DNA of 64,000 bases, taken from positions 372,001 through 436,000 of the forward strand of contig LSRY02000056.1 of assembly GCA_001643675.2 (NCBI GenBank), written 5' to 3'. The notes below the pieces were generated by a model that was not told the origin of the DNA, made no database searches, and worked only from the letters and a program-made list of their open reading frames with translations. Of this stretch, positions 27,563-62,413 are shown piece after piece (position 1 is the first letter of the stretch; each line of letters begins with the position of its first letter). Both the position numbers and the translations under genes were made by a program. Source of the stretch: Monocercomonoides exilis PA203 (taxonomy: Eukaryota > Protista > Preaxostyla).

Positions 27563-28335
27563 TCAATCTTTGTCCCGTTTTAAATGCAATTAATTTTGTA
27601 AATATCCCAATATTATTTTTATAAATGACAATGTTTTTTTTCTATCGATGAAAGATTTTTTATGATAATTATTATTTTTGTCTTTCAAAATCGAACTAAA
27701 TTCTTTGTAATATCAATTGATGAATAATAAAAGACATTAAGACTTTCAAAAATTATTTGCGAATCGAAAATTTTTTGGGTTTATTTGAAATGAAGAAATC
27801 TTTGAAAAACTTAAATTCAATTTTTTGGTTTTTCAAATTCTTTGAACATTCAAAATTATTAAAATTGTTTATTTCGGATTCTGTTTGAAGGATATTAATA
27901 CTAAGTGGTCATTTTTTTAACTAGTGACTATCACAATTATTGTAAGATTGGAATTATTTGAATTTCAATAAACAAAAAACAAACAGCATTACCCTTTTTT
28001 TTGTTGTTGCTGTTTTTTTGAAGTAGCAAGATATAACATGGATGTATCAAACCGTTAAATAAAACTGTTTCTTCGTGAAATATATTTGTTTTGATTTTTA
28101 GAATATGAATGCTTTTTTTATTTTTTGATCAAAATAATATCTATTTTTTGTTCAGTCGAAAATTTTTTGATTGTTTTATTTTGTAATGAAAATTTTATTG
28201 TCAGTTAAATTTGTTTAAATCGTTTGAGTTCAATTATTTTTCTATCCTAATGAACCAAGTTTTCTTTTCACTTAAACTTTTTTCGATTTTAATGGATGAA
28301 ATGCGAATAAAAAGTTTTAATTCGAATGATCTGAC

Positions 28336-31300
28336 TTTATTCGAACAAACCCCCTTATAATTGAATGAGAGGCAGTTTATTCAAATAAACGTCTGCTTTC
28401 TCGAATCAACCATGAAAGATTTGAATAAAAAATTAATAGATATTATAATGGAATTTTTGTTCATGTTTTCGATGTTTTTCATGCGTTATTCACGATTTAT
28501 AAATAATAAAAACTAGTGATCAAACATTTTTTTCGTGAAAATCAATGAAAAACTTTTTTATGAAGTAATTTAATGAAAATTTTCATGATTCATAAATTTA
28601 TTTTAATTATTTTTCACATATATAAGAGGTTTTTTGTGGAATTATCATTTTTTACAACTTTGATCATAACATAAATTGGAAATATTTCATGAAAATAAAG
28701 ATTTCTTCTTCTTTTCACATTGGAATGATTATTTCATGTTGAAAAGGTTATTCGCCAAACTGATTGATAATGTATATTAATAAGTCCTTCTTTATTTTGC
28801 ACTCATCTTGTTTCACAATCTTTATTTTTTGATTCTGATTTTTAGAAATTATTACCTTAATTTTTCGATTATGATAGTTATTTAACAAAAAAGCCGTTTG
28901 CATTTTTGCGTGCTCGTCCAATTGCTGTTGAGTGAGCAATATTATTTATTCCTTATTTGAACGTTAGCACGAAAATAAAAATCCAAAAGAATATGCAAAA
29001 ATTACGCATTCCTTAAACATCATTTGCGATTCAACGTAAAGAATAGTTTGAAAACTTCTTTCGTGAAAATATGAACATGTTTATTGTTTATTTGCTTTGA
29101 TTCATTTTTTTAACATTGCGAAAATATCCTTCATATTCTTTCAACATTGCTTTTGATTTTTGTAGACTTAGAATCACATTTTGTTTTTCTGTTGACTTTC
29201 CATTCCGATACGCCCAGCCACTCATTCTCGTTCCAGTGAAATTCATTCACCGGATCAGTACAGAATTGTAATATTATACCCGTTATTAGCTGCTCAAATT
29301 ATTATTCACAGAACCGCCATTTTCTGCACTGCTCGACACACACCCCTACACATTTGTCTTGTTCACAACAACTTCCACCCCACCTTCTTCCCTGCTCCAA
29401 ATAACAGACGACTTGTTCGCTGTTTGCAAAATACCAACCTATGCCGATCTGAAGATGGTAATTGATGAAGGGTGATTGGGAGAGCTGTTAGTACTGCTTG
29501 CTGCTTCGACAATGGAGCATTTGGACAGGCTGCATGACGAAATTCGATGGAATCGAATGTGCTCGAAGATCCCTCATACAGCAAAAATATCGAACGCATG
29601 AGATTGTTGTTTGTCAACTCAAATTATGTTCAAATATGTTTTTCCACTTTTACAACAGAAAAGGTATTTGCACCAAGCTCAGCGATACTTGCGTGTGGGT
29701 CAAAAGAAAACTCATCCATTGCCAATGAACCCTGCTTGCTGAGGATGATTGTGCTGACTTCGTTGCTGAATTCATTGACAACGTGGAGAGAGATCCCTGA
29801 AAGAGAGAGGCTCCAACTGTTCAGGAGGTATGGATTGGATCACTTACTGTCTTCCTGGAACAGCAGCTCTGACTGCGCTGCTTCCTCGCTGGAAAACGAC
29901 TGGCAGGTGAAGTTCGACAAGTCTGCCGGACAGATGAAGTGTGCTGGGTAGCTGATGCAGAACGTTTTGTGTACACCCGATACATCCATGCGCTCAAAGC
30001 CAGTCACAAAGGATCTGCAGGAATCGATCCGCGATTCACACGAAGCAATGACAAATCCAGCATCGGTCATGTTGATCTCACTGGATGCGAATGGAACAAG
30101 GAAGCGGGACAGATCAGCATTTACAAATGTTTGATCGCTCTCCACAAACGTTTGCGAATCATAAACACACAGTTCGAATAAGAGGTGGAAGGTGGCTGAG
30201 GTTTCACTCTTTCTGAAGTTGAATCAGTCCACATATATGTTTCTTCCTTTGGCTGAATCGTTGCTCGCAAAAGTGAATGCCTCTGAAAGGGATGTTGCTT
30301 TGTTGCATCTGTGTCTGTCCTTTTCACATTCAGAACATTTCTTCTGTCTGCTTTGTTATAGTTCCATCCGTGGTTAAACTCTCACCAAGCTGCACTCAAA
30401 TGGTATTCGCTTGGAAGAATCACTCCAATCAGTTCATTTGCATCGCAATCCAAGGTTCAGCTTTCTTGAAATACACTTGTGTTCATCTCCACAGATCTTC
30501 AGATGCACAGGAGAGATAAAGAGGGAGCAAAAGCGTAGACACGCACCCTTCCGTCTGTACACTGCATCCTTCAGCACGAACAAGTGCGCCTTCAACCCGA
30601 GGAGAGCTTGCTGGAGCAAACGTCTTGCTATCGAGCAGAAGTCGATCCCGAGGTGTGGAGGAAGATACGAGTCGGAGAAACGAAGAAAGGAATTCCTGAC
30701 AACAGAATAATCAGTACGGACGAAGCTCTGTCTATCTGTGATTAGTACAGCACAACGGAGGGTACCATCGTGTGCGGCAGAAGAAAATTTGAATATAGCC
30801 TTTTCAGAGCTGCTGGAGGAAACTGATAAAAATTTCTGGTCGAACTCGTTTCGGATAAGCGCCGATTCCTCGAAAGCAAGCGTATTGCCTGCTGAACCTG
30901 AATTAATATTCAGCGTTCCTCTCCAGAACGATGCACAAAGAAAAATGTCTGAACCGCACACCAGTATATCGAAGCCGTTGGGATGGATGCAGGAGCTGGA
31001 GAACATGTCATTTCTCATTCCATTTATACCTGAATAGCACAAGAAAAATGAGAAAAAACTCATTTGGTTGCATTTATCAGAGTTTTCCCAGCTATTCTTC
31101 AGAATTCAACACCTCCGTTTTAATGACACTTATTGAATTTTCATTTTTCATAAAAGAATTAACTTTTTTCTCAATAAGTTCATTTGAACTTATGTTCACA
31201 AACGTACTTTTGAACACATATTAAAGTCAGTTGTTTGTCGTATGTTTCGTTTTAATAATAGGAAATATTTCTTTCAGGAAAACTATTCTTAATATTTTTT

Positions 31301-31600
31301 ACAATTTTTAAAAGGAGCTAACATATTTTTATTATCCGATTTTTCAAATTTTTTAAGTGAATTCGCAAAATGAAATGTGAAATGAATGAAAATTGTTATT
31401 TAAATATTCAATTCAAATTTTAAAACATCTTTGAAACATCAAAATGTTTTGGATTATTTCGCATTTCGATCGAAAAATCCCACAATAAAAAATAACTCAA
31501 ATAAAGGGCTCAGTTTTCAAATAAACATGGTTTATACGAATAAACTGCCTGTATTTGAAATAAAGGCTATTTATTCGAATAAACTATCTTTATTCAAATT
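28336..31600. repeat. Degenerate inverted repeats (about 28336-28390 and 31529-31600) built on TTTATTCGAATAAA-like palindromes
   Basis: Reverse complement of the left copy gtttatttgaataaactgcct..ttcgaataaa aligns by eye with the right copy gtttatacgaataaactgcct..ttcgaataaa. Confidence 0.5.
29200..31050 (-). pseudogene. GC-richer degenerate coding island of unknown family
   Basis: Coding-like composition in an AT-rich region; consecutive minus-strand ORF pieces (30434-31063, 30121-30327, 29840-30145, 29363-29617) broken by stops and frameshifts. Confidence 0.45.
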
Positions 31601-32729
31601 AAAATTTCTTATTCGAATTTCATCCAATAATGAATAATTCAATTGAATGTAATCAACATCGGTGATAATAACAAATGTCTGTGTTAATATTTGATTTTTA
31701 TTTTTCATTCATTACTTATCACATATAATCACAGGATTAAACAAAAAAAAAAACACAAATTATTAAAAAATAGATTTGTTAATTCATAAAAAAAAAGGTT
31801 TATTTTTAAAAAAACTCATTTAATTGATTAGAAATAATATGAAAAAGGAAGCCATCATAAGATGCAACATCATAATAATTGCTTTCTTTATGATAAAATG
31901 TGTCTTTGTCAAATTTTTTCCGATTAGTTCATTTTGTTCAAATTTCAGGTAAATATTGTTATAGAACATTTTCGTCAAATTTTCATTCCAACTAATAAAA
32001 ATTCCCTGCCATAGAACTTATCGTATTGACAACCATTTGTTTCCATACTGATGAAATTTGATGAGTTGGAATAAAATTAAGATGAAAAGATACAATTTCT
32101 ATTTCACCTGAGATAATTACAAATTCAACTTTTTCGAAAAAAAAAATTAAAAACATATAATTGTTACAAAAAAATTTTTTTGTATGAAGTCACATCTCTT
32201 ATAATCATAATCTGATATTATCACAAAAAGTTGTGCATAATTCAATGTGATTATATCCTTTTTTTATCTGGGGATTATTTTTTAAATGGGTGATTTTTTT
32301 TGATATCATAAAAAAAGATCAAAAATAGAAAAAATATAATCTATAGTGGTTTTTATTGATCAAAAAGTTAAGTTGATATCTCATAAGTATTTAGCTTTTA
32401 TTTCTGTCATATGTATTTGTTTTATTTATTTATATAAAAAATCATACCTTTTTAATGTTTTAGTTTAAAAGTGATTTTTTTGATCAAGTTTCAAAAATTA
32501 AAAAAAATAAAATAAAAATAAAAAATCATCTTTAAAAGGAAAATTGATATTTCCAAACTGGAAAAACAAAACATTGTTAAGAAAAAATTAAAAAGAAGAA
32601 CAGAAAAGAAGAAAAGAAAACAAAATTTTTTTGACAAATTTAACATTAATTATTATTTTTCTTTTTTTTCCTCACCTTTGTATAGCTAATAAATCTCCGT
32701 TCATTTTATTCGATTCATCGGATTCATCA

Positions 32730-35700
32730 AACAGAAACAGATAAAGTGGAATATTGGATTAACACAAATTCGAAAGCTTGTTCCCTCACATTACTCTGAA
32801 TAAAATTGTAGCAAACAATGGAGCCGATGCTGATGGCTGTAATTAAACATAGCAAAACACTTGCGCCATTATCGAATATGCCATCAACGGCTTCATTTCC
32901 CTCTTCCAAGACGCTTCCCTCACCCTCCTTTCCTCAACATTTGTTCCTTCTCAAACACTCACTTTCGAAGCGGTTGACACAAAAATCATTGATAACAATA
33001 ACCTTTTTCTAATTTCTTTAAAATTTCCTCAATTATTTCTTCTTCAAATTTTGTTTTATTTTCCATGTCATAGAAAAATCCATGAGCTATCATTTTCTTT
33101 TCACCAGAAGTTTAATTTTTTTCAAAATCCTAAACGAAAGACCAGATAAAAATATTTCTTCTCCATTTCTTCATATAATTTTTTCTTTTCATCAAATGCA
33201 AATAAAGCTCATTGCCTGAAGGAATCTTCTATTTCATCTCTTCAAAATGCATTTCTTCATCGTTTCATTTGCAACAATTCGCCGTGGTTTCGCTGCTGTG
33301 AAATCTGCCTAAGGCTATTTTCAAACATCCAAACAAAATAACTTTTCTGTCTGTTTTCTGTGAATTCTTTCATCTTCCAAATGAAAAAGTCAGAAACATT
33401 TTCTTGTTGATGACGTGCATGCTTTTCTTTGCTTTGTGGAGAATCGCTTCAGTCGTAATGTAATTTCAGCTGTTATTTATTATTTGTATAAGTATTTCTT
33501 TGTATCTCTCCAAGTTGCAACGAAAGATGAGGTCTGACTCCGAATTCAAGGAGAGTTGAATGAAAAAGAAGTAGACGAAGAAAGAGCAGGCAGTGAAAGT
33601 GGAGAAAGTGAGCCAGGACAGCAAGATTAGAAGCAGATGGATGAACAGCTTGAGATAAAAGGAAGGGAGATGAAGAGATTCTGAAAGAAGGAGAAAATTG
33701 AAGTTGGATGTTCATAAAAATGAACGAATTGACAAGTGAAAAAGTTCGGTGAGAAAGAGGATGAAGAACATTTTTTGTATTAACAGCAAGATCAGCAGCT
33801 GAATCAAAAGGCGTAACAAAATTGAGGGCAGGGTATTTCTGCATCAGATCCATCGCCTTTGAATTCTGCGATGTGAAGAAAGACGTCAACTTTGAGAACA
33901 ACATCGAAGAAAACAGTTTTGACATCACATCTTTTATTCCAGGCACGCTGCTCTGACTGAATGTTCTTTTCACTTTCTCCTTCTGAAACAGCAGAGCTGA
34001 TCCTTTCCATGCCCCTTTATTTCCCTTTCTGTGTGTTTTTTCTGCTTCCTTTTCACAGTTCCGCCTGGCTCAGCTTCAGCCCACTCTTCAGCGCACTCAT
34101 CAGATCCAACCGCGTTCTTGTCTGCCTCGCGTCGACTGCTGCATGCACAGGCACTTTTCACATCTTCCACACAAATTGCCCGTTTTCCTCGCTTTTGATG
34201 CGAACATAGCGGCAGGGCACATCCAATTCATCGCTCAAATCTTCTAAGTCAGAATTAGCGAGGTCATTCAGCATGCAGTCCAATTTCCTCTCTCTTGTCA
34301 AAATTGGCGTTTGGCTTTCTTTCGCCTCTTGCTGCACCTCGCTTGCCACTTTGTTCTCCTTCTGGTTAATTGGTGTGCCTATCTCAATGTAAGGTTGCAG
34401 TATTCCTTGGATGCTGCTTAACAGATTCTTGTATTTTTCTTCAATCTTCTTCGCCATTTTCTCCATTTTCCGGCGCTCCCGCTTTTCTTTCTTCTTCCGC
34501 CTCTTCTCTTTCTCTTCTTTCTCCTTCTTCTTCTTCTGTCTTTCCTGCAGTTTCATCAGTCGAAGCAGTTTTTCTTTCTGATCATCAGATTCCAATGAAT
34601 TAAACGTGATTTTCGCTTCTTCATCGTCCACTTTCCCTTTCTCATTCTGAAACTCATCTTGCATCGCCCTTGTCACTTCTTTGTTCAAATCCTTCATCCC
34701 CATCACACTCAACGTCACCACTCCTCCTCCAACAACAACAACAGGTGACGGAAGCGTTGTTGAGGCACCAATAGCTCCTCTCCACATTTCCAACCGCCTT
34801 CCTTTTGCTTCCCTCGTGTTAAATACATCGTTCCAAAAGTATCTCTTGCTGAAAAGAATTGTTTAGGCTATGGAAAAGGTGATTGTGTTGTGTACTGTTT
34901 CTGCTGTTTTTGCAGGACTTGCGATGAAAGTGGCTCTAGTTTTGGCTCATTATTGTTCGTTTCAAGTTTTTTGTCATTTTTAATGGATTCTTTGGTGTTT
35001 GCACTCTTTTCTACTTCCGTTTGATAATATTTGCTTTTGAAACAACTGCTTTGGGGTTGTTCATTAAATCCTCCAAAATCACTTCTTTTCCTCATCTTTT
35101 CCATAATCTTCATCTTCTTCAACTTCTTCCTTGTTTCCATTTTCATTCAAAGAATTATTCCATTCTTTCTCTTCTTTTCCGTCTTCTTTGCCATCTCCCT
35201 CACTTTTTGCAGCATTTTCATTAATTCCTGGTCTTTTTATCGACTCGTCAATAGGAACCGGAGAAAGCAGCAGGTTTGGTCTGACCATCAAAATCACCTC
35301 ATTCACAACAGAATCACGTTGAAGCTCAAGCGCCTGGCAATACCTTCGCATCAGCCTCTGTTTCTCTCTCTCTGTTTGTGCCTCTTCTCTCTTCGCTCTT
35401 CTTCATCACTGATGATGGAGCTGTCGGAAAGGCATTCACTTTCTTCTTTATTCTTCGTTTTCTTCAGAGAATCTCTTCTAATCAATGATAAACTCTCGTT
35501 TTCTTCTGCTTTGACATTATTTTCTTTTTCATCATCATTGTTATTTTCATCATTTGCAGATTTCAATGCCTTCCTCATCTTAATCAGTTCTCTTATTCTT
35601 CTCTTCTCTCTTCTCTCGTTCCTTGCTTCTCTCTCTCTCCTTCGCTCTCTCTCTTTCTCTCTTCCTTTTCTCCAGATTCTCCGCATACCGCTCCACCATC

Positions 35701-38240
35701 CGAAACTCTGCAAACAGCGGCAGCGCCTCAAACACATCTGAAGGGAGAACAAAATATTGTTTTTTTCTTCTTCTTCCGAACTGCTGCCTCATCCTCCTCA
35801 TCTGCTGCTCTTCTCCTGTCAGAAATCTGTTTCCAGAAGAGCGAAGCAATGAGGAAGAAGAAGAAGAGGAAGAAGAACGTGAAGCACCAGAAGCAGCAGC
35901 CACTTGTGCACAGCGGTTGAGATAGCGTCGGCGGAGGAGAGGATGCATTGCTCTTATGCGGCGAGCCATAGCAATTTCAGAACGATGAGGTGGTTTTGGA
36001 TGGAGAGAGAGGTCAGTTACTGCTGGAGAAGATGAGGAAGAGGAAGAGGAGGGAGAAGGAGATGGCCGGCAAAGAGAAAGAAAAGATTCATCGTACAATG
36101 AAGAAGGAGATGTTCCTCTTCTTGTGCCAATTCCAGCAGTTGAATGAGTCAAAAAGGTTTGTGTTGAATTTTGATTGATTTTTCTCTGTCTTTGTCTTCG
36201 AGGCACATAAGATGGATTCAGATCGCATCTGACTGAAAAACGGACAATTCTCTGCTCGAAATGAGGCTGTTTGCAAGCGAACCGAATCTTCTTCGCAGAA
36301 TGCCATCGCCGTTGTTCAGCACTTGCTCAAAGAGGAAATCGTCAATGAGAAAAGTTGCATAGTCAAAAAAACCAAATGTGTTGATGGTGTTGGAAGATGA
36401 GTAGTTTTCGAGTGTCAATGGATTGACTCCACATTCATCAACTGCCTCGTCTGTGTCAAGATGCTCTACCCAATCGCCTAACAGTCTAAAGCCAGGAAAT
36501 TTCTCTCGTTTCTCTTTCTCTTTTCCTTTCCCTTTTTCTCTCTCTTTCAGTTTTTCTTTCCACTTCTCCTTCTCTCTCTCCCTCATTGCTGTTATTCCTG
36601 TTATTCCTCTCACAACATTTCCTCTTTTTCTCTTTCCATCTTTCCCATCATTCCCTTTCTCATACATTCCAGTGAAAATAGCCATAATTCTCTGCTCTTT
36701 GTTCGACGTCTGTTTGTTTCTCTGCCCCCATCTCAGTCTGTTTTGTCTCAATTGAAGTTTTCTTGTGCGAATGTTAGAAAATTCGTTGCCTTCATCAAAG
36801 AAAGGCGGAGGATAAGGAGAAAGATCAGGTGAAGTTGACTGAGAAAGAAGCTGTTGAGTGAGAAAAGAATGAGGGAGAGAAGGGATGTGTGAGTGAGAAG
36901 AGAGAGAAAGGAAAGAAGGAGAAAGGGAAGAAAGGGAAGACGATAAAGAAGAAGTGGAGTTGGAAGGAGTTGATGGAGAACGAATAACAGAAGAGAAAGA
37001 AGAAGGTTTGAGGGACGTTTTGAAGTTATGTTGTGGTTGTTGATTAAGATGTTGATGATGATGATGATGGCGAGGATGAGAAATGAATAAGAACATGAAT
37101 AAGAAAAATTAAAAGAAGAAGAATATGATGTGTTTAATGAATAAATGCCTGTTGGATAAAGATGATGAATAGATGCAGAAGAAGGCGAAAAGCGTTGAGT
37201 GGCGAAATGGAAATGGAAAGAAGAGGAAAGAGGAGAAAGAGGAGAATATTGAAGAGCCAATGAAGAAGGAACAAGAGAAGATCTGCTTGTTGAGAGAAGG
37301 CGGTGAATGAAAGGTGAATTGAATGAAAGAGAAGGATTAGGAGGATGTAAAGGATGAGGTGGAGAAAGAGAAAAAAAAGAAAAAGAAATCTTATGATATG
37401 ATATTGATATATTTGATAAAGAAGAAGATGACGATGATGAATGAATGTCATGAAATGATTAATTGTTGAAAAGTGAGAAGATGGGAGTCAATAAATATCA
37501 ACGTAGAATTTCATTGAAATTCTCTTCTTCAGGATTTTGTCTTCTTCTGGCAAATAATAGCCTCTGAATCCTTTTCACTTTCAGCTCAATCCTCTTTCCC
37601 ACCAACAAAAAATACAAAACACGCGTCAATCACTTTTTCATTCCATGCATTTTTCTTTCAATTCCCCTTCTTTCACAAAAAATCATCTTTCCTGAAAAAT
37701 AATTCTTCACCAAAGCCCAGTGTCAGGAATCTTCGAAATATCTCGCATTTCATCTATCTGTATTTTTCTTCCTTGCTTTTCTTCTTCTTCTTCAAAGCCA
37801 CCTAATCCTTAACTCTTTCAGCAACCTGAATGAAAAAATTATAATCACTTCGAAAAAAATAATAACAACAGCAAACCTTCTAAACATTTTTATATGCAAT
37901 TTTCTGTTTTTTATTCCATTGCCAACTGTTTCCCTCCAATAAAAATTCTTTATTCCTTCCATTTTCAAATATTTCTTCATCTGATTTTCTAATCGTCCTT
38001 TCCGGAAGTCATTTTCCCATCAAATGCATCGATTTCCCTCTCTTCTGAAAAATGTGAAATTCATGTTTTCTGCTCAAATTTCATCTTTCTTATTGAAAAA
38101 TATCCTTGTTTCTCGTCTGAAAATATCATCTCCAAATTCCTTCCCAATCCCTTCACCCTAAGCACATTCCATATGAAATTGCTCTCCCAACTCCATAGCC
38201 ACCCTTCATAACGAGATATCCCGCTTTTATTCATTTCCAT
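32730..38240 (-). pseudogene. Fragmented pseudogene forming the left arm, facing away from the transposon; possible RCC1-like and BTB-like remnants
   Basis: Chain of broken low-complexity minus-strand ORFs; 5' end lies in the long inverted repeat; shares motifs with the right arm (LRQNRLRWGQRN..QRIMAIF vs LRKEEFDWGESN..DRLDAMF). Confidence 0.5.
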
Positions 38241-38891
38241 TCTTTTTGACCTGTTTCCGTTAAGAAAGAATAAAAACGGTCAATAAAAAATAATCATATA
38301 TAGAAATAATAAATAAATGCCAAACTTCCTTCTCTGCCTTTTATTAGCAATTATTCTTTGGCATATCAATCATATAAATATTTTCATTAAAAACAAAAGA
38401 AAGAACATCTATTGATTGTCTATGAAAAAGATTTGTTTAAAAAACATGTGTTTTCCTCATATGATAACAAATAACAAACCTCGATGCTACGTCAATGCGA
38501 GAAAAATTGTTGAAAGAACATTTTGAAATAAAGTTATGGAATTTTTTCTCATTGAAAAAAGTTCTAAACACACATTTTTTTTTAATCATTTTTAATGAAT
38601 ATTGTTGTTTTAATAATTATGAAGCGTATGAGCACTAATAGAATATAAGCATTTTCTCGTTCTTGAAAGAACAAAAAAGCGAAAATTTTTCATAGATTTT
38701 TGATCTGAAAATTTGAGATACATTTTTCGAAAAAGAGGTCACACCTTGGTGCCCCTTTTTTTGACATATTTCATACACCGTCATTCTAACAAATCGATTC
38801 GTGCAAAAAAATACCACCCAAGGTGTGACCCTCGTGGGATACCTTAAAAATATTTTTTCCTAATGATCATATCCATAATTATTTGGATATG
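37510..38891 (+). repeat. Left copy of a 1382-bp inverted repeat
   Basis: Reverse complement of 44866-46247; paired coordinates sum to 83757 at both ends and at the identical mirror ORFs (37792-37980/45777-45965 and 38635-38817/44940-45122). Confidence 0.97.
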
Positions 38892-39696: not shown

Positions 39697-42600
39697 ATGT
39701 CTTTTTTGAAACCTCAATCAACTCTTAATTCTCGATGCAAAGTTATTTGGAACGAAATAAAACGAATTGGTGGAGATGACGTTAATTCATTGCTTGTCTA
39801 TCTATTTTACAACTACAGGCAATCATCTTCAGTAATTAACGATTTGTTGAAGTCATTAAACGGTTTGATTATTATTTAGTCAAGTTTTATATAGAAAAAT
39901 TTATGGACTGTCATTGTTGTCATTTTCTTATTTATTTGCGAATTATTTATATTCATAAACAGAATATCATATAAAGCTGCTGGAAGACCTGTCTGTGGTG
40001 TACAACAACGCTCCGTTGCACACTCAGACAACAATGCTGCAAGCGCTTTCCCGCAACACATCATTACCCGATTTACAGGACTATGGATATGATGTCACAG
40101 AAGGAAAATTCAGTTACGCGAAACAAACTCTGAAGAAAAACCAAGGATTTATTATTCCGCCTCAAAAACCTCATCTTCCGTCTTGCAAAAGTGGTTTGTA
40201 TTTATTTTATTTTTTTTTTTTGAATTATGTTCTCTTTTTTCCTTAGGCTTAAATGAACAGGACTGGGAAAAGGGCAACAACTGGATGTTAGCTCATTCAA
40301 CTGAAGCCTCCACTTCTCTCCAATCGGCAAAGAAAAAGCAGCGAGCGGAGCCAGATTACGCCAGATTTATTGACGAAGCAGCGTGGGAAGATGAAATTAC
40401 TACAGAAAACTCTTCATCAAAGAAAAAACAATCTTCTTCATCAGATAAATCACATCAACAAAATAAAAAATCATATATTATTTCGGAAAAAAATTCATCT
40501 TCATTAAATCCTTCATCGTCTGAAGCTGTTGATGCACCAATCAACACTCCAATTATGAGAGAAAGGAGATCAACAAAAAGAAAAACAAATAAATCACATC
40601 AAAAACGTCACTCGTCTCCTTCACCCATTCAAATTCACAAATTCTTCAAAACAAAACAATCGTCATCCACTTCCTCATCTCCCTCATCTTCCTCATCTTC
40701 CTCATCTTCCTCATCTTCCTCATCTTCCTCATCTCCCTCATCTTCCTCATCTTCCTCATCTTCCTCATCTTCCTCATCTTCCTCATCTTCCTCATCTTCC
40801 TCATCTTCCTCATCTTCCTCATCTTCCTCATCTTCCTCATCTTCCTCATCTTCCTCATCTTCCTCATCTTCCTCATCTTCCTCATCTTCCTCATCTTCCT
40901 CATCTTCCTCATCTTCCTCATCTTCCTCATCTTCCTCATCTTCCTCATCTTCCTCATCTTCCTCATCTTCCTCATCTTCCTCATCTTCCTCATCTTCCTC
41001 ATCTTACTCATATTCCAAAAAGCAACAAAAAGCAACAACAAACACTTCTTCTTTCAGCAACAATGATGTGTGGGTGAGTGATCAATTAGTTGAATATGCC
41101 ACTTCACCCACTCTTATTCCTCCTCAAGCATTCCAAAATCTCTTTTCTTCATTTTCAAAAGAGAATGGCACTTCAACACTTCAACAACAAAGCATTCAAT
41201 CTTCAAATAATGAAATATGTCAAAAAAAAATTTCTTCAAAAAATATTTCAAAAAAGAATGCGAAAGAAAATTCAACAAAAAATTATTCTCATTCTCAATC
41301 TTCTTCAAATTCATTATATTCTTCAAATAAATCATCCCAAATAGCAAAAGGATTGCCAAACTTAGGCAACACTTGCTATTTGGCTTCTCTTCTTCAATGC
41401 TTCTCTTCTGTAATGTCACAAAAACCATCTTTAATCAGAAAACCATCAACAACAAAGAGCATATCTTCTCGTGTATTAAGTGTATGCAATCAACTATCCA
41501 AAGATGGAATTGAAGTTCATTCGTGGATCTCATCGCTTATCAACAAATGGGAAGACTTTTGTGGATATAGTAGCGGACAGCAACAAAATGTGACAGAAGC
41601 GTTTGACAATCTTCATCAACTTTTTATCAAAGATGAGTTAATAAAACAAGATTGCTTCAATCCTGTTTTGATCACTCATTTGAAATGCCAACAATGCCAA
41701 AAAGTTTCAAATTGTTTCAATGAAATTGGAAACAATGTGGTTATTAATTCATCTTCTCCTCATAAAGGTCTATCTTCTCTCTTTTCTACTGAGATATTGA
41801 ACGGAAAAAATGCTGTCTATTGCAACGATTGCAAAGAGAAATGCTGCGCTGCGAGATGGGAGGAAATGGCTGCATTTCCAGAGGTGCTGGCCCTCTGTCA
41901 CGAATGCACTGACTCTGCTATCTCTGCTCCTTCACGAACTCTTCTGATTGAAACAGATCGTGTTAACAAGCGAACATTTATCAAAGGGTTTTCTACAGAA
42001 AGTATTCAACATCTCCAAAAGAACAATAAGGAAATCATCATATATCATCTTGTTGGACAAATTCTTTTTCAGCGTCTGGATCAACAAAATGGGCATTACA
42101 TTGCAGTTGTGAAAAGGAAGGCAGGAAGAGAGACACTGTGGAATATTTGCAACGATTCTGATATACTTGAATTGGACAAAGAAAACTGGACAAAGGCATG
42201 GAAGGATCTTTATGCTCAAGGTTTCACTCCTTCACTCTCATTCTATACCAAAGAAAAAACCAGACCAACTTTTTCATCAATTCAATTTGGTGGTTCTTCT
42301 TCTTTTTCTTCAGAAACATCAAATTTCAATTGTTTAAATAACACAACAACAACAACAACATCGTCATCATCATCTTCATCATCATCATCATCATCATCGT
42401 CGTCGTCGTCGTCGTCGTCTTCGTCGTCAACATTCATCACACCACCACATCGAACCACTTCCATTCCACAATTGTCATCAACAATCGCCTCAAGCTACGG
42501 ATTGGAATCACTGAAAGAAAGAAGAAAGAAAACGGGCATCTTTTCTCCCAATGAAAAGAGATTAATTTTTAAGCCCAAGACAAAATTGTGGAGTGAGTTT

Positions 42601-43305
42601 TCAGAAGAAACAAATATCAAAGTTTCTTTGTCTCACTTTTACAAACTCACTTCAAACTTCTCCAAAGCAAAAAGGCGCACAGATCTCTGTGGCATGTGCG
42701 AGAAGTTGGACTATCTCGAGAACAAATTAAAGTCATCTCAAAACAAAAATGGACTGTCTGAAGCAGAGTTTCATACACTTAAATTACTTCGACAACATCG
42801 ACTTGTTGCAGAAATGCAACGCAAACATTATCAATCTTCTGTCGACAATCTGAAAGAGGGAGAAGCAGTCTTCGTCTTCGACTTCAAAGAGAAATGGAAA
42901 CTCCCCATCAGAAAGAACCAACTTCAACAGGAATTCTTCAATTATCAACAGGTTTCTCAATTCACAATCATCTCTCTTCAAAAAATTAATAATCAACAAA
43001 TAAAAAGAACATTCAACTTCTTCTCCGACTGCCTCTCAAATGATCACAGATTTGTTATTGAGTGTCTGGAATCTGTGATCAAAAGACACTTCTTCTCAGA
43101 CACTCACACTTTTAAGTTCTTCTGCGATTCGGGTCCACACAACCGAAATCGCTTCCTTCTTCACTTCATCCTCTCTAAACAATCCAAACTTCTCAAAAAG
43201 AAAAATACACAACTCAACTTCTTCGCTGAGCACCATGGAAAGAACATCTGTGATAGTGAATTTGGTGCACTTGTGAACACAATCAACAACAACCTATCAA
43301 CTTAA
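39697..43305 (+). CDS. Transposase with in-frame ubiquitin-specific protease (peptidase C19) domain; exons 39697-39862, 39963-40193 and 40247-43305 (1151 aa); the same frame resumes after the TAA and runs to 43797
   Basis: USP: GLPNLGNTCYLASLLQ, QQQNVTEAF, CQQC/CNDC, GHYIAVVK, WNICND. Transposase: VSLSHFYKL..RRTDLCGMC, VFDFKE (D at 42880), FFSDCLSND, FCDSGPHNRN (D at 43126), FFAEHHGKNICDSEFG (D at 43252). Confidence 0.88.
40672..41004 (+). repeat. 9-bp tandem repeat (TCCTCATCT) of about 37 units encoding a poly-Ser linker
   Basis: Directly visible near-perfect array with two CCC variants. Confidence 0.97.
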
Positions 43306-43822
43306 CACATCACCACACTTCATGACTTGATCAACTTCTTCAACAACAATATGAACATATCGGCATCAGCTTCTTCGACATCACAACAAGACATTTTTGA
43401 ATCATCCTCAACCAATTCTTCTCCATCAACATCAACTGTCAATGACTCTGCACATGAGAGGTACTTTGAAGAGTATGTGCCATCTCAGCAAATCTCATGG
43501 CCATCGCTGTCAGTCCCTCACATGAAGGACTACTTGTATTTTGAGCGCAAGGGCTCATTTGTCTGTGCTTCAGCTGTTGGATATCTTCCTCAACGCTCTC
43601 TGGTTGCCCTCGAATCTTCGACAATGAAGGAAAAGGTTCAACGTTCAAGAAAGACTTTCAACTCTGGTAACACATCATCCAACTCTTCTCTTCTTTCTCA
43701 ATCTTCTCAAGATCTTCTTTCAAGGAGATTTGAGCTTCTTCTTGACTCTTCTTCTTTTAATGGATCTCAAAATTGTTTTAATGGTGTCCCTAATTAAGAA
43801 ACTAGTTGTTGTGTATGCTTAG

Positions 43823-44865: not shown

Positions 44866-46247
44866 CATATCCAAATAATTATGGATATGATCATTAGGAA
44901 AAAATATTTTTAAGGTATCCCACGAGGGTCACACCTTGGGTGGTATTTTTTTGCACGAATCGATTTGTTAGAATGACGGTGTATGAAATATGTCAAAAAA
45001 AGGGGCACCAAGGTGTGACCTCTTTTTCGAAAAATGTATCTCAAATTTTCAGATCAAAAATCTATGAAAAATTTTCGCTTTTTTGTTCTTTCAAGAACGA
45101 GAAAATGCTTATATTCTATTAGTGCTCATACGCTTCATAATTATTAAAACAACAATATTCATTAAAAATGATTAAAAAAAAATGTGTGTTTAGAACTTTT
45201 TTCAATGAGAAAAAATTCCATAACTTTATTTCAAAATGTTCTTTCAACAATTTTTCTCGCATTGACGTAGCATCGAGGTTTGTTATTTGTTATCATATGA
45301 GGAAAACACATGTTTTTTAAACAAATCTTTTTCATAGACAATCAATAGATGTTCTTTCTTTTGTTTTTAATGAAAATATTTATATGATTGATATGCCAAA
45401 GAATAATTGCTAATAAAAGGCAGAGAAGGAAGTTTGGCATTTATTTATTATTTCTATATATGATTATTTTTTATTGACCGTTTTTATTCTTTCTTAACGG
45501 AAACAGGTCAAAAAGAATGGAAATGAATAAAAGCGGGATATCTCGTTATGAAGGGTGGCTATGGAGTTGGGAGAGCAATTTCATATGGAATGTGCTTAGG
45601 GTGAAGGGATTGGGAAGGAATTTGGAGATGATATTTTCAGACGAGAAACAAGGATATTTTTCAATAAGAAAGATGAAATTTGAGCAGAAAACATGAATTT
45701 CACATTTTTCAGAAGAGAGGGAAATCGATGCATTTGATGGGAAAATGACTTCCGGAAAGGACGATTAGAAAATCAGATGAAGAAATATTTGAAAATGGAA
45801 GGAATAAAGAATTTTTATTGGAGGGAAACAGTTGGCAATGGAATAAAAAACAGAAAATTGCATATAAAAATGTTTAGAAGGTTTGCTGTTGTTATTATTT
45901 TTTTCGAAGTGATTATAATTTTTTCATTCAGGTTGCTGAAAGAGTTAAGGATTAGGTGGCTTTGAAGAAGAAGAAGAAAAGCAAGGAAGAAAAATACAGA
46001 TAGATGAAATGCGAGATATTTCGAAGATTCCTGACACTGGGCTTTGGTGAAGAATTATTTTTCAGGAAAGATGATTTTTTGTGAAAGAAGGGGAATTGAA
46101 AGAAAAATGCATGGAATGAAAAAGTGATTGACGCGTGTTTTGTATTTTTTGTTGGTGGGAAAGAGGATTGAGCTGAAAGTGAAAAGGATTCAGAGGCTAT
46201 TATTTGCCAGAAGAAGACAAAATCCTGAAGAAGAGAATTTCAATGAA
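44866..46247 (-). repeat. Right copy of the 1382-bp inverted repeat
   Basis: Reverse complement of 37510-38891. Confidence 0.97.
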
Positions 46248-49200
46248 TTTCTCAGTTGATAATAATATGCATTAATCTGCAAAATTTTCGATCTTCAAAA
46301 ACCTCATAATTACACTTCTCCTTTTTCAACAGTCGATGCCAAACCACATCACATGCCTTCTCCTTCTTCGTTATCTTCCTCTTCTTCTTCCTCATCCTCA
46401 TCCTCTTCTTCTTCTTCCAAATCCACCTCCGACTCACAATCTGAAGCGATGAGCGTGATAAAGTCGAAACCGGAGATGAGCTTCGATTCAACTTCTCGTT
46501 TTTCCACTGAATGTTTCGTGAGCGGAGCGGTTGTTTGCGTGTTTGAGGGCAATGTGGCAGTGGGAAAGCATGGCATCTTTCAGAACAAGCAGCAGTGAGG
46601 AGAAATGGCAGGAAAGCAGATGAAAAGAGCTAGAAAGGAGAAGAGAAGAGAAGAGGGAGAGGAGGAAGATAGAGGAAGACGAGAAAATTATTAAGAGGAC
46701 GAAGGAGTAATGAGTGATTCAGAGCAAAAAAAAGCAAAGATACGAAGAAAGCGCAAAACAGAAGAGATAAAAAGAAACATCTGATGATCTGAGCAAGCTG
46801 CGGAAGGAAGAATTTGACTGGGGAGAATCGAACTATTTTAGAAAGCAGGTGATCAAAGACACAATTAAAGACAGGCTTGATGCGATGTTTGGGAACAAGA
46901 TATCGAAAAGTTGGCGGAGAAGAAGAAACGGACACAGAGGGAGTCACGAAAATAAAGAAAGGAATACAAGAAATCAACAGAATTCTTCTTCCTCTTCTTC
47001 TTCTTCCTCCTCTTCTTCTCCACACAGCAATTCTCACAATCGATCTTCTTATTCAGACTCCTTCTTCGAAGTGAGCGAAGATGAAAAAGACGAAGAAAAC
47101 AACGAAGCAAACGACACTACAGATGGCTCAGATTATCCATAACATGCAAGGCAATCAGCAGAACGAGATGTTCGAATGGATTTTGGCTCATCCTGCGTCT
47201 TCAGAGCGAATCAAGTGCGACATGCGCTGATGATGCAGCCAAGTAAGTTTGCAATATACAACTTTGTGGTGTGTGCACCGTCGATTCGATATGGTTCGTA
47301 TGGAGAGGAGGAAGAAGAGGAAGAGAAGGAGAAGGAGAGAGAGAAAGAGAAGAAGGATGAAGAGAAGGAGAAAAGAAGAAAGAGAAAAAGAAGGAAAACA
47401 AAGGAAAAACTGAAAAAGGACTGACTTTTCGAAATCCGAAGGGTAAACAACGGATAAGAACGCAAAAAAAATAGAGAGTGCCTTTTTATCACAAAATATA
47501 CAACAAAAAATGTACGTCATCATCATCATCACTTGCAAGTTTCGATAAATCTGACGCAAATAAAAGCGAAAAATCTTCTTCTTCGTATTCTTCTTCTTCT
47601 TCCTCCTCTTCCTCCTCTTCATCTTATTCTTCATCCAACCAAGTGATCTATACAGCTTGTTCTCCACACACATATTTCACCACAAATGACTGGGCGCATC
47701 TTCTCTCTTCATTCAGCAACCATCCCAAACGATTCCATCACAGCATAAACATTTTTGGAAGAGCTGTTTCTTCGATAAGGAGAATGCATCAACAATTGAT
47801 GGAAGATGATTCTGAAGTATCTTCATAAAACGAAAACGTTGAAGAAGAAGAGAACAAAGAATTTGAATCATCTCAAAATCCAAAAAAAACATTCACACAA
47901 ATCTCAAAATCATACTTTTTCTTCTTCTTCCTCTCATTCTCTTTCTTCTCCTCCTCATTATGTTGACCATTGTCTTCGTCTGATCAACCGACTTGCGTAT
48001 GTGATGAGTGTGCGGACGCTGCATCTGGTTGAGCGGTAAAACTTAACACGTTTTTTGCACTGGAAAAAAAAGTTGGTAAGACGTGGACTTGTGGAGAATA
48101 ACTTTGAGCAGGCAGATGTGGAGCAGGAGTAGGAGAAAGCAACATGGCGGAACAGAACGCGTTTTGAAGAAGGAGATGCAGAGAACAGGTGAAAGAGGAG
48201 AAGATGCTGAGTGCAGAAGAAATAGCTGCTTTGTTTAGTGATTTTCTTTCAAAAGTTAAATGTGATGGAGAAACTAATGGGATGAGTCATCTTGGCAACT
48301 TGAGTGATAACAATAAACTTGATTCTACGACTCAATCAGAAAAAAATTAGCAACTTTCAGATAGTGCTTGGCCGGAAAGGCAACTTTGCTCAGCTTCCAG
48401 AAACTCATTTTTCCTCTTCTGCTATTCTCAACTGCAACTCCGTATTCATTCACAGGCACAGAATAAACAGCAACCTTCACATTCTTCTTCTCCACCTCCT
48501 TCCTCTGCTTTTCCACTTGGTTTGCTTTCTTCCCATTCTACATGTCATCATCCACACAGAAGAAGGGCTGGCTGTCAGGTGAAGAGTTCTGTTGAGCCAG
48601 AGGCAAAAGGGAAAGATGAACCTTATTTTTTAATAATCACAAGAATTCTGATTCATTTTGTTGAGTGCTCAGATCGAAAGGGACAGAAAGAGGATAAAAT
48701 GAAGAGGTGAAATGATGATTTGGAAGATGAAGGAGGTCTTGGAAATGAGGGAGATTGAGGTGAATTGCAATAAAAGCAGATGAAAGGAGGTTATAAAAGG
48801 AATTTAGAAAAGAAAATAGCAAAGAACTTGAAAAAGTCAGAAAAGGAAACGAATAAGAAGAGAGTGAAGGTGAAAGAGAAGGAAGAAGATGCAGAGAAGG
48901 ATACGTAAACACGAAAACCTCAGAATCTTTAGAAGGACCATTGGATGACCAAATTTATTCGTCCAAATCTGAACAATTTGAAGGAGCGGCTGCTGAAAGA
49001 AAGGAGCAGCAAGAATTTGTATCTTCTTTTATATCATCTTCCTTCTGATCGTCATCACGGCCAATTGGTTGTGAGGCAACTGAATGTTGCTATGTCCAAA
49101 TATCTTGCTCTTTTGCTACCTCTTCTTCGGATGTGGAGAAAGAAGCAGCAGATGAAACATGTTCAAATGCAACTTCGATCACTTTCATTACAAAACCTCC

Positions 49201-51780
49201 TTTGACTGCCACCAATAATCTTCTTCTTCTTCTTCTTCTTCTTCTTCACCTTCTTCTTCTCCTTCTTCTTCTTCCTCTTCCTCTTCTCCTTCTTCTACTT
49301 CTTCTTCTTCTTCTGTTTCTTCTTCTTCTTCTTCTTCTTCTTCTTCTTCTTCTTCTTCTTTTTCTTCTTCTTCTTCTTCCTCCTCCTCCTCTTCTTCTTC
49401 TTCTTCTATTTCATCTTCTTTGTTTGCATAAATATTATGTAACACCACTTTTTCATCATCATCTCTTTCTTCATATGATTGGATTTCTTCTTTTTTTTTC
49501 TCATCTTTATATGGGATGATTACAGAAAGAAAGAAGAATGTTATTTCTGAAGAAAAAAAAACAGTTGAAAATGAGAAGAAGATTGAAAAGTCAATGAAGA
49601 GAATGAAGATATAGAGATAGAAGAATTCGTTTAGACAGGATATGATGAATGGAAATTGGTAAGTGAAAATTGCTGAGATTTTAAAAAATGAGGAAGTTAA
49701 ATGGAAATGGGGAGAAGTTGGAGGAGAAGAAGATGATGAACCAGAACAGGAAACAATGTGGCAGGAAGGAATACGTTGAATATCTGAATCATTCTATCTG
49801 TTGCTTCTTTTTCATGAGCGTTATGGAGCACAGATACGAAGAATGTGGAAGTGCGCAGAGATGTGATTCAGTTAAGGGAACATTTGTGGTTGAGAAGCCA
49901 AAAGGAGGTCCATGAGAGCATGCCATCACCTCTCCAGGGAAAGGCAATAATGACAGAACAGCGAGAAGGAGGCGAAGTTTTAGCAAGCGGATTAATTATT
50001 AGGGAAGACGGGGCTATTAGCGAACTTACAGCAGTTGATACAAGCACGTGTTTCTGCGGAGACTATGTTCGGCTGTTCTTCTTTTGTAATGAATTAGAAA
50101 GGCTCTTCATTTACAGACACTTTCTTATGAATCAGATGTAGTGTCCAATTGATACTTGTGGCAGCTGCAGAGCGAATCCATTTATTGGGCATGTCTCGAG
50201 TACAGCTATAGATCAATGGATAAACGCGACTGCTCTCCAAAAGGATGTAGAAGTTCCGTTCTGGAGTATGGTGCAGTTTGAGATACACTGGAGCCATGCT
50301 GCTGTTTCATTCGAATATGTTGCTGATAAGGTATCCAATCAAAGATGGTAGTTAAGACGGAGAGCATCAAGCTGAAGGGACTTTCTGATATTTTTATTCC
50401 AAAAAGATAAATAAGAACAATTATACCGCATTCAATTGCGATATACGTTGAGATAAGATGCTGTGCTGAGCTATTGGATTCACCATCAAAAGCGAATTCG
50501 ATTGAAGTAGCATTTTGTGAAGAGATGTTGATGTTGGAGAGAAAGACGCAGGAATTGGGAAGAGCACGAAGATCGGATAGGAAGAGGCTCAGATATCCTC
50601 TTCAAGCACAAAGAAGTATGTGGTTGAGGTGAAGATGCTTGTTGGAAGGAGAAAGGAGAGAGGAGGACTCAGCAAGAGATACGACGATGAAGGAGAAGAG
50701 GGAAGAGTGAGTGAAGGAGTATGAATTATGAGAAAAGATGTGATGGCAAATGAGAATGCAGCTTGTGAGATATAACAGCAGCAAGTTGGCGAAGGCGAAA
50801 TGAGCAGGAACAAGACTTTAAGAGACAGATATGATTCGAATGTTGGAAATACAAAATAAACTTTTGGTATGGAGGACATCTGCGGAGGTGGGGCCCAGGG
50901 GGCAAGCGGGGAGCCGCAATAGTGCGCAATGGAGCCGGTGTCTTGATTGACAAATATATGATGGGCGCAGTCGAATATGATGAAGGTGACTTTGTTGAAG
51001 TCGAGATCGGGGTTGGGGTCTGTGTAGGAGAAGTCAAACGCGCAGATTGACGTGTTTCAAGCGAAAGAATGCTGAGTGAATCCGAAGGAAAAGAGGGACT
51101 CGTTGATTTGGGCGGGGAAGGAGGAGCATCGGAGAAAGAGGTCCTTTCCCATGAATACATTATTCAAGACGAAGCAGAAGTTGAGGATGCATTCGGGCAA
51201 GCGCAGCTACGACTTCTCACAGTTGAGGAACACCATTGCAACTCCGCCCTCGGAAGACTCTTCGCTCACATAACTGGTAAACACATACGCCTCAGAAGCG
51301 CAGTCAAAGGCACATCACCTTTCCAAATTAACACAAGAGCTGCTCAGTTGGATGAGTGCACAATGTTGGTATTATTGGAGGAGTGAAAACCGATTATTGT
51401 TCTTTGGTCTGGGGCAGACAAGCCAGCCAGAGAAGCGGAGCTATCCAGAGCAGATGGGCAGATAGCCACGAGGGAATTGCTAGGGAGCCAAGAGGTAGAG
51501 ACTGAGAGGAATTCAAGTTTAGCTGAGGTGGATGCAGAAACGGATATGATAATGATGAAGAGGCGAGGGTTCAGTAGTTCAGAGACACACACTTTTTCCG
51601 CTTCCACAATCGTTAATGAAAAAAGTGTTTGTTAAGCCCGAATGAAAAAGGAGCGTCGCGACAAAAGGAGAGGAGCATCAGGTGTGGATATCTGAATGAA
51701 GGATAAGAGACGAGGAAGAAATATAGAGAATCAGAGGAGAAACGAAGGGAGGAGGATAAAATGAAGGTGTTCGCGCGATA
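45517..51780 (+). pseudogene. Fragmented pseudogene forming the right arm, paralog of the left arm; possible RCC1-like and BTB-like remnants
   Basis: ATG 45517 MEMNKSGISRYEGWLWSWESN then, after a 1-nt shift, SYGMCLG (RCC1-like); CGDYVRLFFFCNELERLFIYRHFL near 50050-50125 (BTB-start-like); many stops and frameshifts. Confidence 0.5.
49218..49406 (+). repeat. Imperfect (CTT)n microsatellite
   Basis: Directly visible. Confidence 0.9.
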
Positions 51781-53775
51781 GAAGCTTATTAAGAATCTAA
51801 TGCAAAAATTTGCAAATTTCTATTCAATTTTTATTATTTTCTTTGTTATTTTTCTATATCTTTGTTTGATCAATTTATAAGAAAAGCGAATTTTAAGAAT
51901 TTTTTGTTTCTAAACAAAAATAAACAACAAACCGTTGTATCTCTGATAAATATCTTGTTTAACTATTCAATTTTTCAATCGGTGTCAAAAAAAAACTGAC
52001 TGTTTTCAACAAACATTTTATGATCTTCAATATGAATTTGAAATTTTCTATGCAACAAAATCATAAAACAAATTTTTTATAAGAAATTGATTTATTGAGT
52101 ATTGAAACAATCATTATCATGCTTTTCAAGCAAGATAACTTATGTTTTTTTCTGTTTATCAAATTTTCGAGATTTTTTGAAAAATTTTTTAAGTTTTTTT
52201 ATAAATTTGTAATAAAAACAATTGGAAACAAATTAAAATCAACAAATAATTAATAATAATAATGCACTCAACTTTTATTTCATGTAACTTCAAATTAAAA
52301 CTTTCTCTTCAACCCCACCCTTAATTAAAATATATTTTGATCAAACTTCGTAAATTTTTATGATATCAAAAAAAATTACCCAAATAATAACTTTTTTCGG
52401 TGTGTTGACTTTTCAAAGGAAAACTATCATAAGAAAGAGTTTATGGATTCCTGTGCTGAATTCATCACAGCAGTTTCAAAAACAAATGTTTGAGCCGAAA
52501 TAAAGATGATAATTACTTGAATGTGCCTCTTCTCTTTTCAGAATTCTTTTGATAACATTCTAGGAAAATTTTCGAACAGAAAAATTTGAATGAAAAAAAA
52601 GTATTTTTTTCCACAAATAATCTCTAAACTTTTTTTATAAAAAATTATTTATCTTTGAGAATTTGACAAAAAGATAAGGATGAAAAGAATAGGAAGAGAT
52701 TTCGGCATTTCATAGATCAAATCATTGTCATTCATTTTTAAAATATTTTTTTGGTTACAAAAATAACTTTAACACAAAGAAAATGTCAAAAAAACCAAGT
52801 GTTTTGTTTCAAATAATCTCATCTGACAGCTTTCGGGATATTGGAAGCTATTTCGAAAGTTTATAGTTTATATTTAACTTCTAATAAATCAAAAATTAAA
52901 AACCAACAATTGATAAAAAAAAAATAAAATTATATTAAAAACAAAAATATAAATGGAACAATTTTCCAATAATGAGTAATCATGTTTTAATTTGAAAAAT
53001 TGTTCACTGGAATGTTTTTTGTAGAAAATTTAAATCTCATATTGAGATGAAGTTTCTATTCCCTCTCTCAATTTTTCTCAAGAAAGGAACTTCAAAATAA
53101 ACAGAATCATTGTGAAAGAAAGTATTTCCATTTTTGTTTAATATTTTTGGATGGAACTGCACTTTGATAAAAATATTCGATTTTTTTTTAACATATGAAG
53201 CATTAACAAAAGTGGCTTTTCAAATATATTTTGACAAATGAGTCGAAATTATAAGCCTATATAAAAATTTTATGTAATCTCAAAGTTTCTGCAAATAAAA
53301 TGGTATTTTCTGCTGCTTCATTTTCAGAAGCTTATCAATAATATTCATTTATTGTCAATATAAATCAAAAATTTCCAAATATTTTCCAACATTTCTACTG
53401 TCAAAATTAAAAAGAAAAAGTAACATCAACGCAAAATTCCTCAAAAAGCTATATAATTACAAAAAAACACTACAACAAAAAAGAAAAAGCAAAAAACAAA
53501 TAGTTATAAATATTCAAAAATGCGTGTTTATAAAAAACAAACATAATTATTATGAAAACACTTTCAAAATCTATTTATTTCTTTTTTCTTTTCTTTTCAT
53601 TCATTTTAATTAATCTTATAAATTCAAAAACAGAACACTTTTAATAATAATAATGTATAATAATAAACTCTCTAACTTTTGAAGTTCAAATTGAAAGTTG
53701 TACTTTATCATAAAATTCTGAATATTTGAAAGAATGCAACACAATTACCAAAGCAATTCATCTTGAAGAATAATT

Positions 53776-61283: not shown

Positions 61284-61885
61284 ACAACATTTCGCAATTC
61301 ATGTTTTCATTCAAAAGCCATCATCTTGAACGAACAGACAGCTTCTTCTGAAATTTTTGTTTATTTTTAATACAGGTTAAAAAAAGCTGAATTTCGCATG
61401 TCATTGAGCTTTTCCAGTTGTGCTGTAATCAAATGTTGATCATTATCTTTGAAAAGTGTGTATAAAAAAAATAATTATTCCAACAACTATCAAGCTTTAG
61501 AGAACACAAAAAAATGAGGAAAAAATGATAATTCATAATCAAAACTTTTTTTAAGAAAAAACGTAAAGGATATTTATTAAAGCAAAAATATCATAAAAAT
61601 TGATTCATTAATTATTAAATTCAATCACATCAAATTCAAATGATTAGCTCGACAATTTTTTGACGTTTTTTTTAAAAAAAATAAATTGATTTTGAAATAA
61701 CGCTTTTTTACTTATCAAATGATTCAAGTTATTGAAAGACGAAGCATGAAGATATATTGCCTGTTCGATGTGGAGAATCTTCAAGAGATGCAAAAGATTT
61801 TGTAAAAAAATATCTAGTCACTTAAAAGGACTTGAAATTTGAAGTGTGAGTAATTATGCTTTTTCTTTGATTCCAATGATTGAGA

Positions 61886-62413
61886 TTACTTTGATTGTGC
61901 TTTTTCTTGTTTAGCTTTTCTGATAGCTTTTGGCTTTGCAGTAACTCCTGAAAAATTTCATTAAACAAACAATAAGAAAAGGCAACACAAAGAGAATTCA
62001 AACCCTCACGGAAATGATTCTTCCAACGGCGAGAAACGTCTTTAAGATAGCTCATTCTTCCTGTTCCTGTAGTTCTACGACGGTTGGCTTTCATTGACCA
62101 TCCATCTATTTTGAGTAACAAAAAAGAAAATAAAAAGTGATAAAAATTATTAAACAATTGCACATCATTAAGAATTAAATATATTAAAACAAACATTTTC
62201 TCATTTTTGGATTTGGATAGGCACATGAAGCGCAACGATGGTGCTGCAAGTGGTATGCGCGCTTTCCACATCTTGGGCACATTCCATGTGATTTACCATG
62301 ACGAGGTCCGAATGAGCTTGTTCCTTTTGTCTAATATATTTTAATATAATTATAAAGATTTCCACACAAATTGGATCGTGAGACTACGGTCAAATAAGCA
62401 AAGATCAAACCAT
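61886..62413 (-). CDS. RPL37: 60S ribosomal protein L37 (eL37), 4 exons; first coding exon is only the ATG
   Basis: M|[45 protein letters not shown]|[34 protein letters not shown]|[20 protein letters not shown]. Confidence 0.97.

Follow-up and report, generated by a model that had tools for sequence, protein, structure and literature searches.

A USP deubiquitinase domain within the transposase of giant Sola2 transposons of Monocercomonoides exilis

The stretch of DNA analyzed here, hereafter called the window, comprises 64,000 nucleotides of Monocercomonoides exilis PA203 (contig LSRY02000056.1 of assembly GCA_001643675.2, positions 372,001 to 436,000). It carries a large DNA transposon whose transposase gene, at 39697-43797 on the plus strand, encodes a deubiquitinase-like domain of the USP (peptidase C19) family within a Sola2 transposase. 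As judged from sequence comparisons, this USP-Sola2 fusion is real, selected and family-wide; it is new for the Sola superfamily and an instance of a known theme. Ten sibling copies were retrieved, giving 11 copies together with that of the window, and labels such as L001-L008, L010 and L011 denote the compared loci.

Results

USP domain and transposase core in one reading frame

The gene consists of three exons and its reading follows the standard genetic code, which fits M. exilis. Exon 1 (39697-39862) is separated by intron 1 (39863-39962; GTTTGA..CAG) from exon 2 (39963-40193), and intron 2 (40194-40246; GTTTGT..TAG) precedes exon 3 (40247-43797). Ends and length of the first intron are the same in six siblings and those of the second in at least two, and the NCBI model MONOS_13149 has both sets of junctions. 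Exon 2 encodes a conserved Sola2 N-terminal module, probably DNA-binding, which is 89-97% identical among siblings and 37% identical to a Logan relative. Exon 3 encodes a linker, the USP domain, a second linker, a CxxC plus DDD core and a C-terminal domain, and an open frame at 40183-43305 (1040 codons) contains the USP followed by the CxxC and the core with DFKE, CDSG and HHGKNICD. An earlier reading of the window without database searches (the sequence-only reading) had taken 39697-43797 for one spliced open reading frame (ORF); the two introns and the common frame of USP and core hold, but the ORF is broken by a TAA at 43303. Likewise, both of the serine-rich linkers noted in that reading are present in frame, but the poly-serine run of about 110 residues is a 9-nt repeat expansion (40659-41006, plus strand) peculiar to the window copy, where siblings have a few serines.

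The USP domain extends from 41341 to 42261 on the plus strand, as a complete USP at about 41350-42250 had been recognized before, and matches Pfam UCH with 54.6 bits (E 1.5e-14; cut-off 23.9 bits), while the USP of an intact sibling reaches 56.9 bits. Matches in the PDB include USP36, USP15, USP21 and USP12, and the best solved relatives are USP34, USP12, USP9X, USP46 and USP21, the catalytic residues aligning with those of USP34 and USP12. The Cys of the Cys box (41374), the sequence QQQNVTEAF, two CxxC pairs that form the zinc finger (41686/41695 and 41821/41830), the His (42094) and the Asn-Asp pair at 42151-42156 (Asn 42151, Asp 42154) are all placed as first read, and the oxyanion Asn lies at 41359. 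The oxyanion Asn, the His, the second Asn and the Asp are invariant in 11/11 copies, the Cys is kept in 10/11, and the finger cysteines are conserved among copies. The Cys box has the form LxNLGNTCY, which is canonical for ubiquitin USPs. In the loop that contacts the ubiquitin tail, QDxxE reads QNVxE throughout the family, with the Glu kept in 10/11 copies and the Asp changed to Asn in 11/11. A single-sequence AlphaFold prediction of the domain gave a low-confidence model (predicted local distance difference test, pLDDT, of 32). With regard to the donor of the USP, homology searches yielded nothing beyond M. exilis proteins and a single weak, unrelated match; by language-model features the closest are USPs of giant viruses, but they are 23-30% identical, no better than human USPs.

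The CxxC and the RNase H-like DDD catalytic core occupy 42550-43302 (plus strand), with the cysteines at 42688/42697 in the same frame as USP, linkers and DDD, and with aspartates at 42880, 43126 and 43252. A search of 1.84 billion proteins led to 637 core relatives, and the three aspartates are invariant or nearly so among 57 relatives. All proteins homologous to the core at 85-95% identity come from M. exilis, their loci being taken from GCA_001643675.2, and no close core relatives were found in JGI metagenomes or viral contigs. A predicted model of the core shows an RNase H fold (pLDDT 92.6), and its best PDB neighbours are IstA, Hermes, PFV integrase and Mos1. Pfam holds no Sola profiles (PMC5751038), and at the Pfam level the core relatives resemble DUF7869 only. 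In an unscored comparison by eye, the core consensus matches Sola2_DFa-2 and Sola2_PPa-1 motif for motif, sharing CxxC-H ahead of the core, DFxEN and HGKxxCD. Motifs and fold support the Sola type proposed for the core in the sequence-only reading, and specifically Sola2, the motif assignment being made by eye and not by profile score.

Conservation of the fusion

In 10/10 siblings the USP occupies the same position, and it is in frame unless the copy has a frameshift of its own. Over 55 pairs of copies, the ratio of non-synonymous to synonymous divergence (dN/dS) was 0.24 for the USP (range 0.16-0.39, and below 0.4 in all 55 pairs); the core gave 0.08, the C-terminus 0.29 and the linker 0.68. 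Variants common to at least two copies gave a dN/dS of 0.21 and singletons one of 0.47, which fits selection in active lineages and decay in dead copies. Whether the fusion is family-wide and under purifying selection had been raised as a question at the outset, and these comparisons support both.

The genome also harbours a second family of the same layout, with a core 42-46% and a USP 21-30% identical to those of the first, and its USP keeps the Cys, GHF and C[NS]D. The capture of the USP is therefore old. Matches to a hidden Markov model of the exon-2 module lie upstream of the core in 11 relatives outside the family, in which the spacer between module and CxxC measures 49-167 aa as compared to about 680-810 aa here; thus, the USP is an insertion into this spacer, in line with the earlier proposal that it was captured into the N-terminal part of the transposase.

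Synonymous divergence is greatest in the USP (0.73), intermediate in the core (0.47) and lowest in the C-terminus (0.24), and USP and core give different trees, a hint that copies have undergone recombination or conversion with one another. Also, diverged Sola2 families (42-62% core identity) adjoin family-1 copies at L001 17288-20414 (minus strand), L002 3477-5548 (plus strand), L007 22873-23619 (minus strand) and L004 20039-20224, and both readable neighbours of this kind have an in-frame USP of their own.

Ends, size and abundance of the element

By extending homology to sibling loci, out to 32284 and 52382, the ends of the element were located. It spans 32288-52381 (20,094 bp), far beyond 39697-43797, the extent to which the sequence-only reading had confined itself, giving no ends. 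Its 27-bp terminal inverted repeats (TIRs) start with GGG, lie at 32288-32314 (plus strand) and 52355-52381 (minus strand) and match each other at 26/27 positions, and they are flanked by the same 4-bp target site duplication (TSD), AAAT, at 32284-32287 and 52382-52385. The left terminus recurs in L001, L004, L005, L007 and L011, with GGG seen in the window, L001, L004, L007 and L011. Elements with this gene between these two ends measure about 17.4 kb in L004, about 17.1 kb in L005 and 21.9 kb in L007, and only one end was seen in L001 and in L011. The TSD is perfect in L007 (ATAT/ATAT) and imperfect in L004 (ATTT/ATTA) and L005 (ACAT/ATTT). According to Bao and colleagues, writing in 2009, Sola2 TIRs reportedly begin with GRG. 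An AWWT TSD is also a hallmark of Sola1 (PMC3845634), and for this reason it does not separate the Sola groups.

L007, the MONOS_13149 locus on LSRY02000015.1, represents an intact copy with an uninterrupted exon 3 and a complete USP, and most sampled copies are broken. The family is abundant, since 19,877 short contigs in one run match 5.4 kb of the element; summed depth relative to the private allele gives a rough estimate of around 100 copies or more, depth not being equal to copy number. Independent samples, namely a gut metagenome and one with another organism label, also contain short related pieces of both domains.

Between the TIRs, the left arm (32315-37495, minus strand) holds degenerate, outward-reading, low-complexity cargo ORFs, which are common to L001, L004 and L005 and gave no convincing Pfam match. 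The right arm (46262-52354) is a cargo region whose outer part is common to L004, L007 and L008. Next to the gene, internal inverted repeats lie at 37496-38891 (plus strand) and 44866-46261 (minus strand), identical over 1382 bp (37510-38891 and 44866-46247). Taking these 1.38-kb perfect repeats for the TIRs was rejected: no TSD adjoins them, the homology to L001 continues across the outer edge, and other copies have different repeats there.

Internal inverted repeats of 95-100% identity surround the transposase gene in 7/11 copies, whereas the repeat arms of most copies show much lower similarity to one another or no relation. Besides those of the window, such arms lie at 7352-7956/13407-14011 in L002, 7682-9070/14272-15660 in L004, 6579-7059/14580-15059 and 4278-4664/15906-16292 in L007, 6991-7860/12767-13637 in L008, 3824-4323/11879-12378 in L010 and 2628-4379/11863-13615 in L011. 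The flanking arms swap sides relative to the gene between L005 and the window and between L006 and L008. Repeat pattern and side-switching suggest gene conversion and flipping of a central cassette. The internal repeats contain a short palindromic pair, GGTCACACCTTGG / CCAAGGTGTGACC (window 38736-38836 and 44921-45021), and GTGACC/GGTCAC motifs recur in the differing arms of L002, L003 and L005. In Galileo and other Foldback-type elements, long inverted repeats are homogenized and extended within a copy and variable between copies; in those elements, however, they form the true ends, whereas in M. exilis the repeats are internal and lie 5-6 kb from the ends.

The window copy carries a private stop codon

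In the window copy, the in-frame TAA at 43303-43305 ends the ORF after 1151 codons and 17 codons past the third Asp, removing the last 164 residues. The C-terminal region that is cut off (43306-43797, plus strand) is constrained in the family, as its dN/dS shows. At the stop position the codon is Glu in 10/10 siblings, and in the sequencing data of this genome the base is G for a depth of 8246 out of 8282 in one run (X1) and of 15246 out of 15436 in the other (X2), so that the TAA is a private nonsense change. Reading it as Gln, as in the non-standard code of other oxymonads, was rejected, since siblings have GAA and it is the sole stop in the 1184 codons of exon 3. An assembly error is unlikely, as T was seen at low depth in both runs. 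Apart from the stop, the private changes in the core of this copy are 8 synonymous and 0 non-synonymous, which indicates that its lineage was active until recently. Truncated in this way, the window copy is probably dead as a transposase.

Stand-alone USP-like genes and an OTU-like relative

A stand-alone USP-like gene, divergent and head-to-head with the transposase gene, occurs in L007 (7450-8936, minus strand) and in L010 and L011 (10001-11486, plus strand), and is missing from the window copy. Multi-copy gene models of it are MONOS_13148, 8903, 18286 and 4204. It shares about 21% identity with the fused USP and retains the Cys, His and Asp of the catalytic triad, and it has no QDxxE loop.

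In L009, a contig of SRR25904989, the protein P0021 carries in the USP slot (residues about 295-445) an OTU-like DGxC...HY pattern that was seen by eye; an OTU identity of this motif found no support in Pfam or the PDB. This relative agrees with the fusion family in its first two exons, its first intron and its N-terminal module.

Surroundings of the element

Directly to the left of the Sola2 element, a separate 3.3-kb element (28289-31630) has imperfect inverted ends of about 100 bp (77%) and a degenerate ORF on the minus strand. To the right, a host TBC/RabGAP-like gene (53776-60348, minus strand) and a ribosomal protein L37-like gene (61822-62280, minus strand) were recognized by eye.

Discussion

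Relation to known transposons

The closest published elements are the Sola2 families DFa-1/2/3 of Dictyostelium fasciculatum and PPa-1/4/5 of Polysphondylium pallidum (Bao and Jurka, 2013; PMC3627910). They share with the M. exilis family the motif chain S.F, RTDxCxxC, DFKE, W/CD..xHF/N and HGKxxCD, as well as short TIRs, a 4-bp AWWT TSD, cargo genes and a large size (10-15 kb). In contrast, the amoebozoan elements encode Fanzor1 as a separate gene and a transposase that has no protease (PMC3627910), whereas those of M. exilis reach 17-22 kb, hold the USP within the transposase and have internal inverted repeats.

The sequence-only reading had implied high novelty, and this has to be reduced. 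XP_001314237.1 of Trichomonas vaginalis joins transposase_11 (IS4/IS5-like) and peptidase C19 (Bao et al., 2010; PMC2836005) and thus resembles the present fusion in having C19 and a DDE transposase in one protein of a metamonad host; by its description it differs in superfamily, and it was mentioned as one protein in passing, without a study of its family or of selection. Ginger1 and Mutator transposases with Ulp1/C48 or OTU domains (PMC2836005) are alike in carrying an in-frame protease for ubiquitin or ubiquitin-like proteins (Ubl) on a cut-and-paste transposase, which is thought to aid transposition, but they differ in protease fold, in the C-terminal position of the protease and in superfamily. 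Transposon-borne deubiquitinases are also known from rolling-circle elements: Helitron VTD enzymes are active on K48 chains, VTD and OTU both being transposon-borne (PMC9741609), and UCH is stably carried in Helentron HLE2 subgroups, where it was reported as a separate ORF (PMC11417382). The literature search found neither a description of this family nor one of a USP in a Sola transposase, most subscription literature and Repbase Reports being outside the scope of the search.

A USP probably kept for action in cis

Our preferred explanation, to which we assign a probability of roughly 0.6, is that these are high-copy giant (17-22 kb) cargo transposons of the Sola2 group in which the USP is kept for deubiquitination in cis. 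The transposase would bind the 27-bp GGG ends and its DDD core would excise the whole element by the chemistry expected for the family; insertion at AWWT sites would leave the 4-bp duplication, ends and TSD being observed. Two or more diverged families would have inherited the USP/C19 domain from a common ancestor that took it up into the flexible spacer separating N-terminal module and CxxC/DDD core, and selection in active lineages would have kept it a working thiol isopeptidase. By analogy with Helitron VTD, the tethered USP would most likely act in cis and strip ubiquitin from the transposase or transpososome, which would thereby escape the proteasome, or alternatively it may strip ubiquitin from chromatin or repair factors at the cut sites. 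A putative counter-defence role of the USP is plausible. The window copy would have been mobilized by a recently active lineage before it gained one nonsense change.

In this explanation the fused USP is a putative working thiol isopeptidase, with activity, substrate and expression all predicted. Several points weigh against it. A UCH domain was found in 0/66 long relatives outside the family, so that Sola2 transposition as such can do without the USP. The Asp of the QDxxE loop is replaced by Asn, the Atlas clusters nearest to the USP contain Peptidase_C98 (USPL1, acting on SUMO) in 25-36% of their members, and the NCBI model of the intact copy (MONOS_13149) has a predicted third intron of about 640 nt that would delete the Cys box in frame.

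The altered QQNVxE loop and the C98 share in the best Atlas clusters would also suit an active protease with another substrate, either a SUMO/Ubl isopeptidase similar to USPL1 or USP18, a role filled by Ulp1 SUMO proteases in other transposases (PMC2836005), or an enzyme that cleaves its own polyprotein and frees the core, for which the long disordered linkers on either side of the USP could be read as a sign. However, the canonical Cys box, the assignment to UCH and not to C98 by Pfam, and USP34, USP12, USP9X, USP46 and USP21 as best solved relatives argue against this, and we regard such a change of substrate as unlikely.

The predicted third intron, whose atypical GT donor is present in 4/8 copies, would fit a USP that is usually spliced out of the working transposase, and the evolution of the USP, three times faster than that of the core, one that is a non-catalytic binder of ubiquitin or chromatin and steers insertion. 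But the window copy and three further copies lack this donor, no pyrimidine tract accompanies the acceptor, the intron is six times longer than the other two, and catalytic residues are kept even at 21-30% identity. Both versions seem quite improbable to us. A neutral passenger, that is, a host USP exon captured once, or an assembly chimera is largely refuted and most improbable: the elements hold much degenerate cargo and most sampled copies are broken, but the low dN/dS in every pair and the same position in all siblings and in a second family oppose this, as do short-read contigs covering both domains in two runs.

Implications

Beyond this proposal, we tentatively consider, as a possibility of low probability, that giant Sola2 elements are self-contained anti-ubiquitin devices. 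They would combine a cis-acting fused USP, often a second, stand-alone USP-like gene that lies head-to-head with it and differs in its substrate loop, and an exchangeable deubiquitinase slot, to which the OTU-like motif at the same position in a relative would point, and all of these would sit in a cassette that flips between internal inverted repeats which homogenize themselves. If so, an early-branching eukaryote would restrict transposases by way of ubiquitin, and there would be an arms race open to direct testing.

The fusion itself adds the USPs, the largest deubiquitinase family, to the cut-and-paste Sola transposons, with evidence for selection that goes beyond one annotated protein. 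Ulp1, OTU, VTD and USP proteases have been acquired repeatedly and independently by transposons, for reasons in question since about 2006-2010, and with the intact natural copy L007 the link between deubiquitination and transposition becomes testable in one protein. In the M. exilis genome, 35% of the assembly was reported as unclassified repeats (PMC8767320); the family described here accounts for part of them and offers a natural system that moves about 20 kb of cargo.

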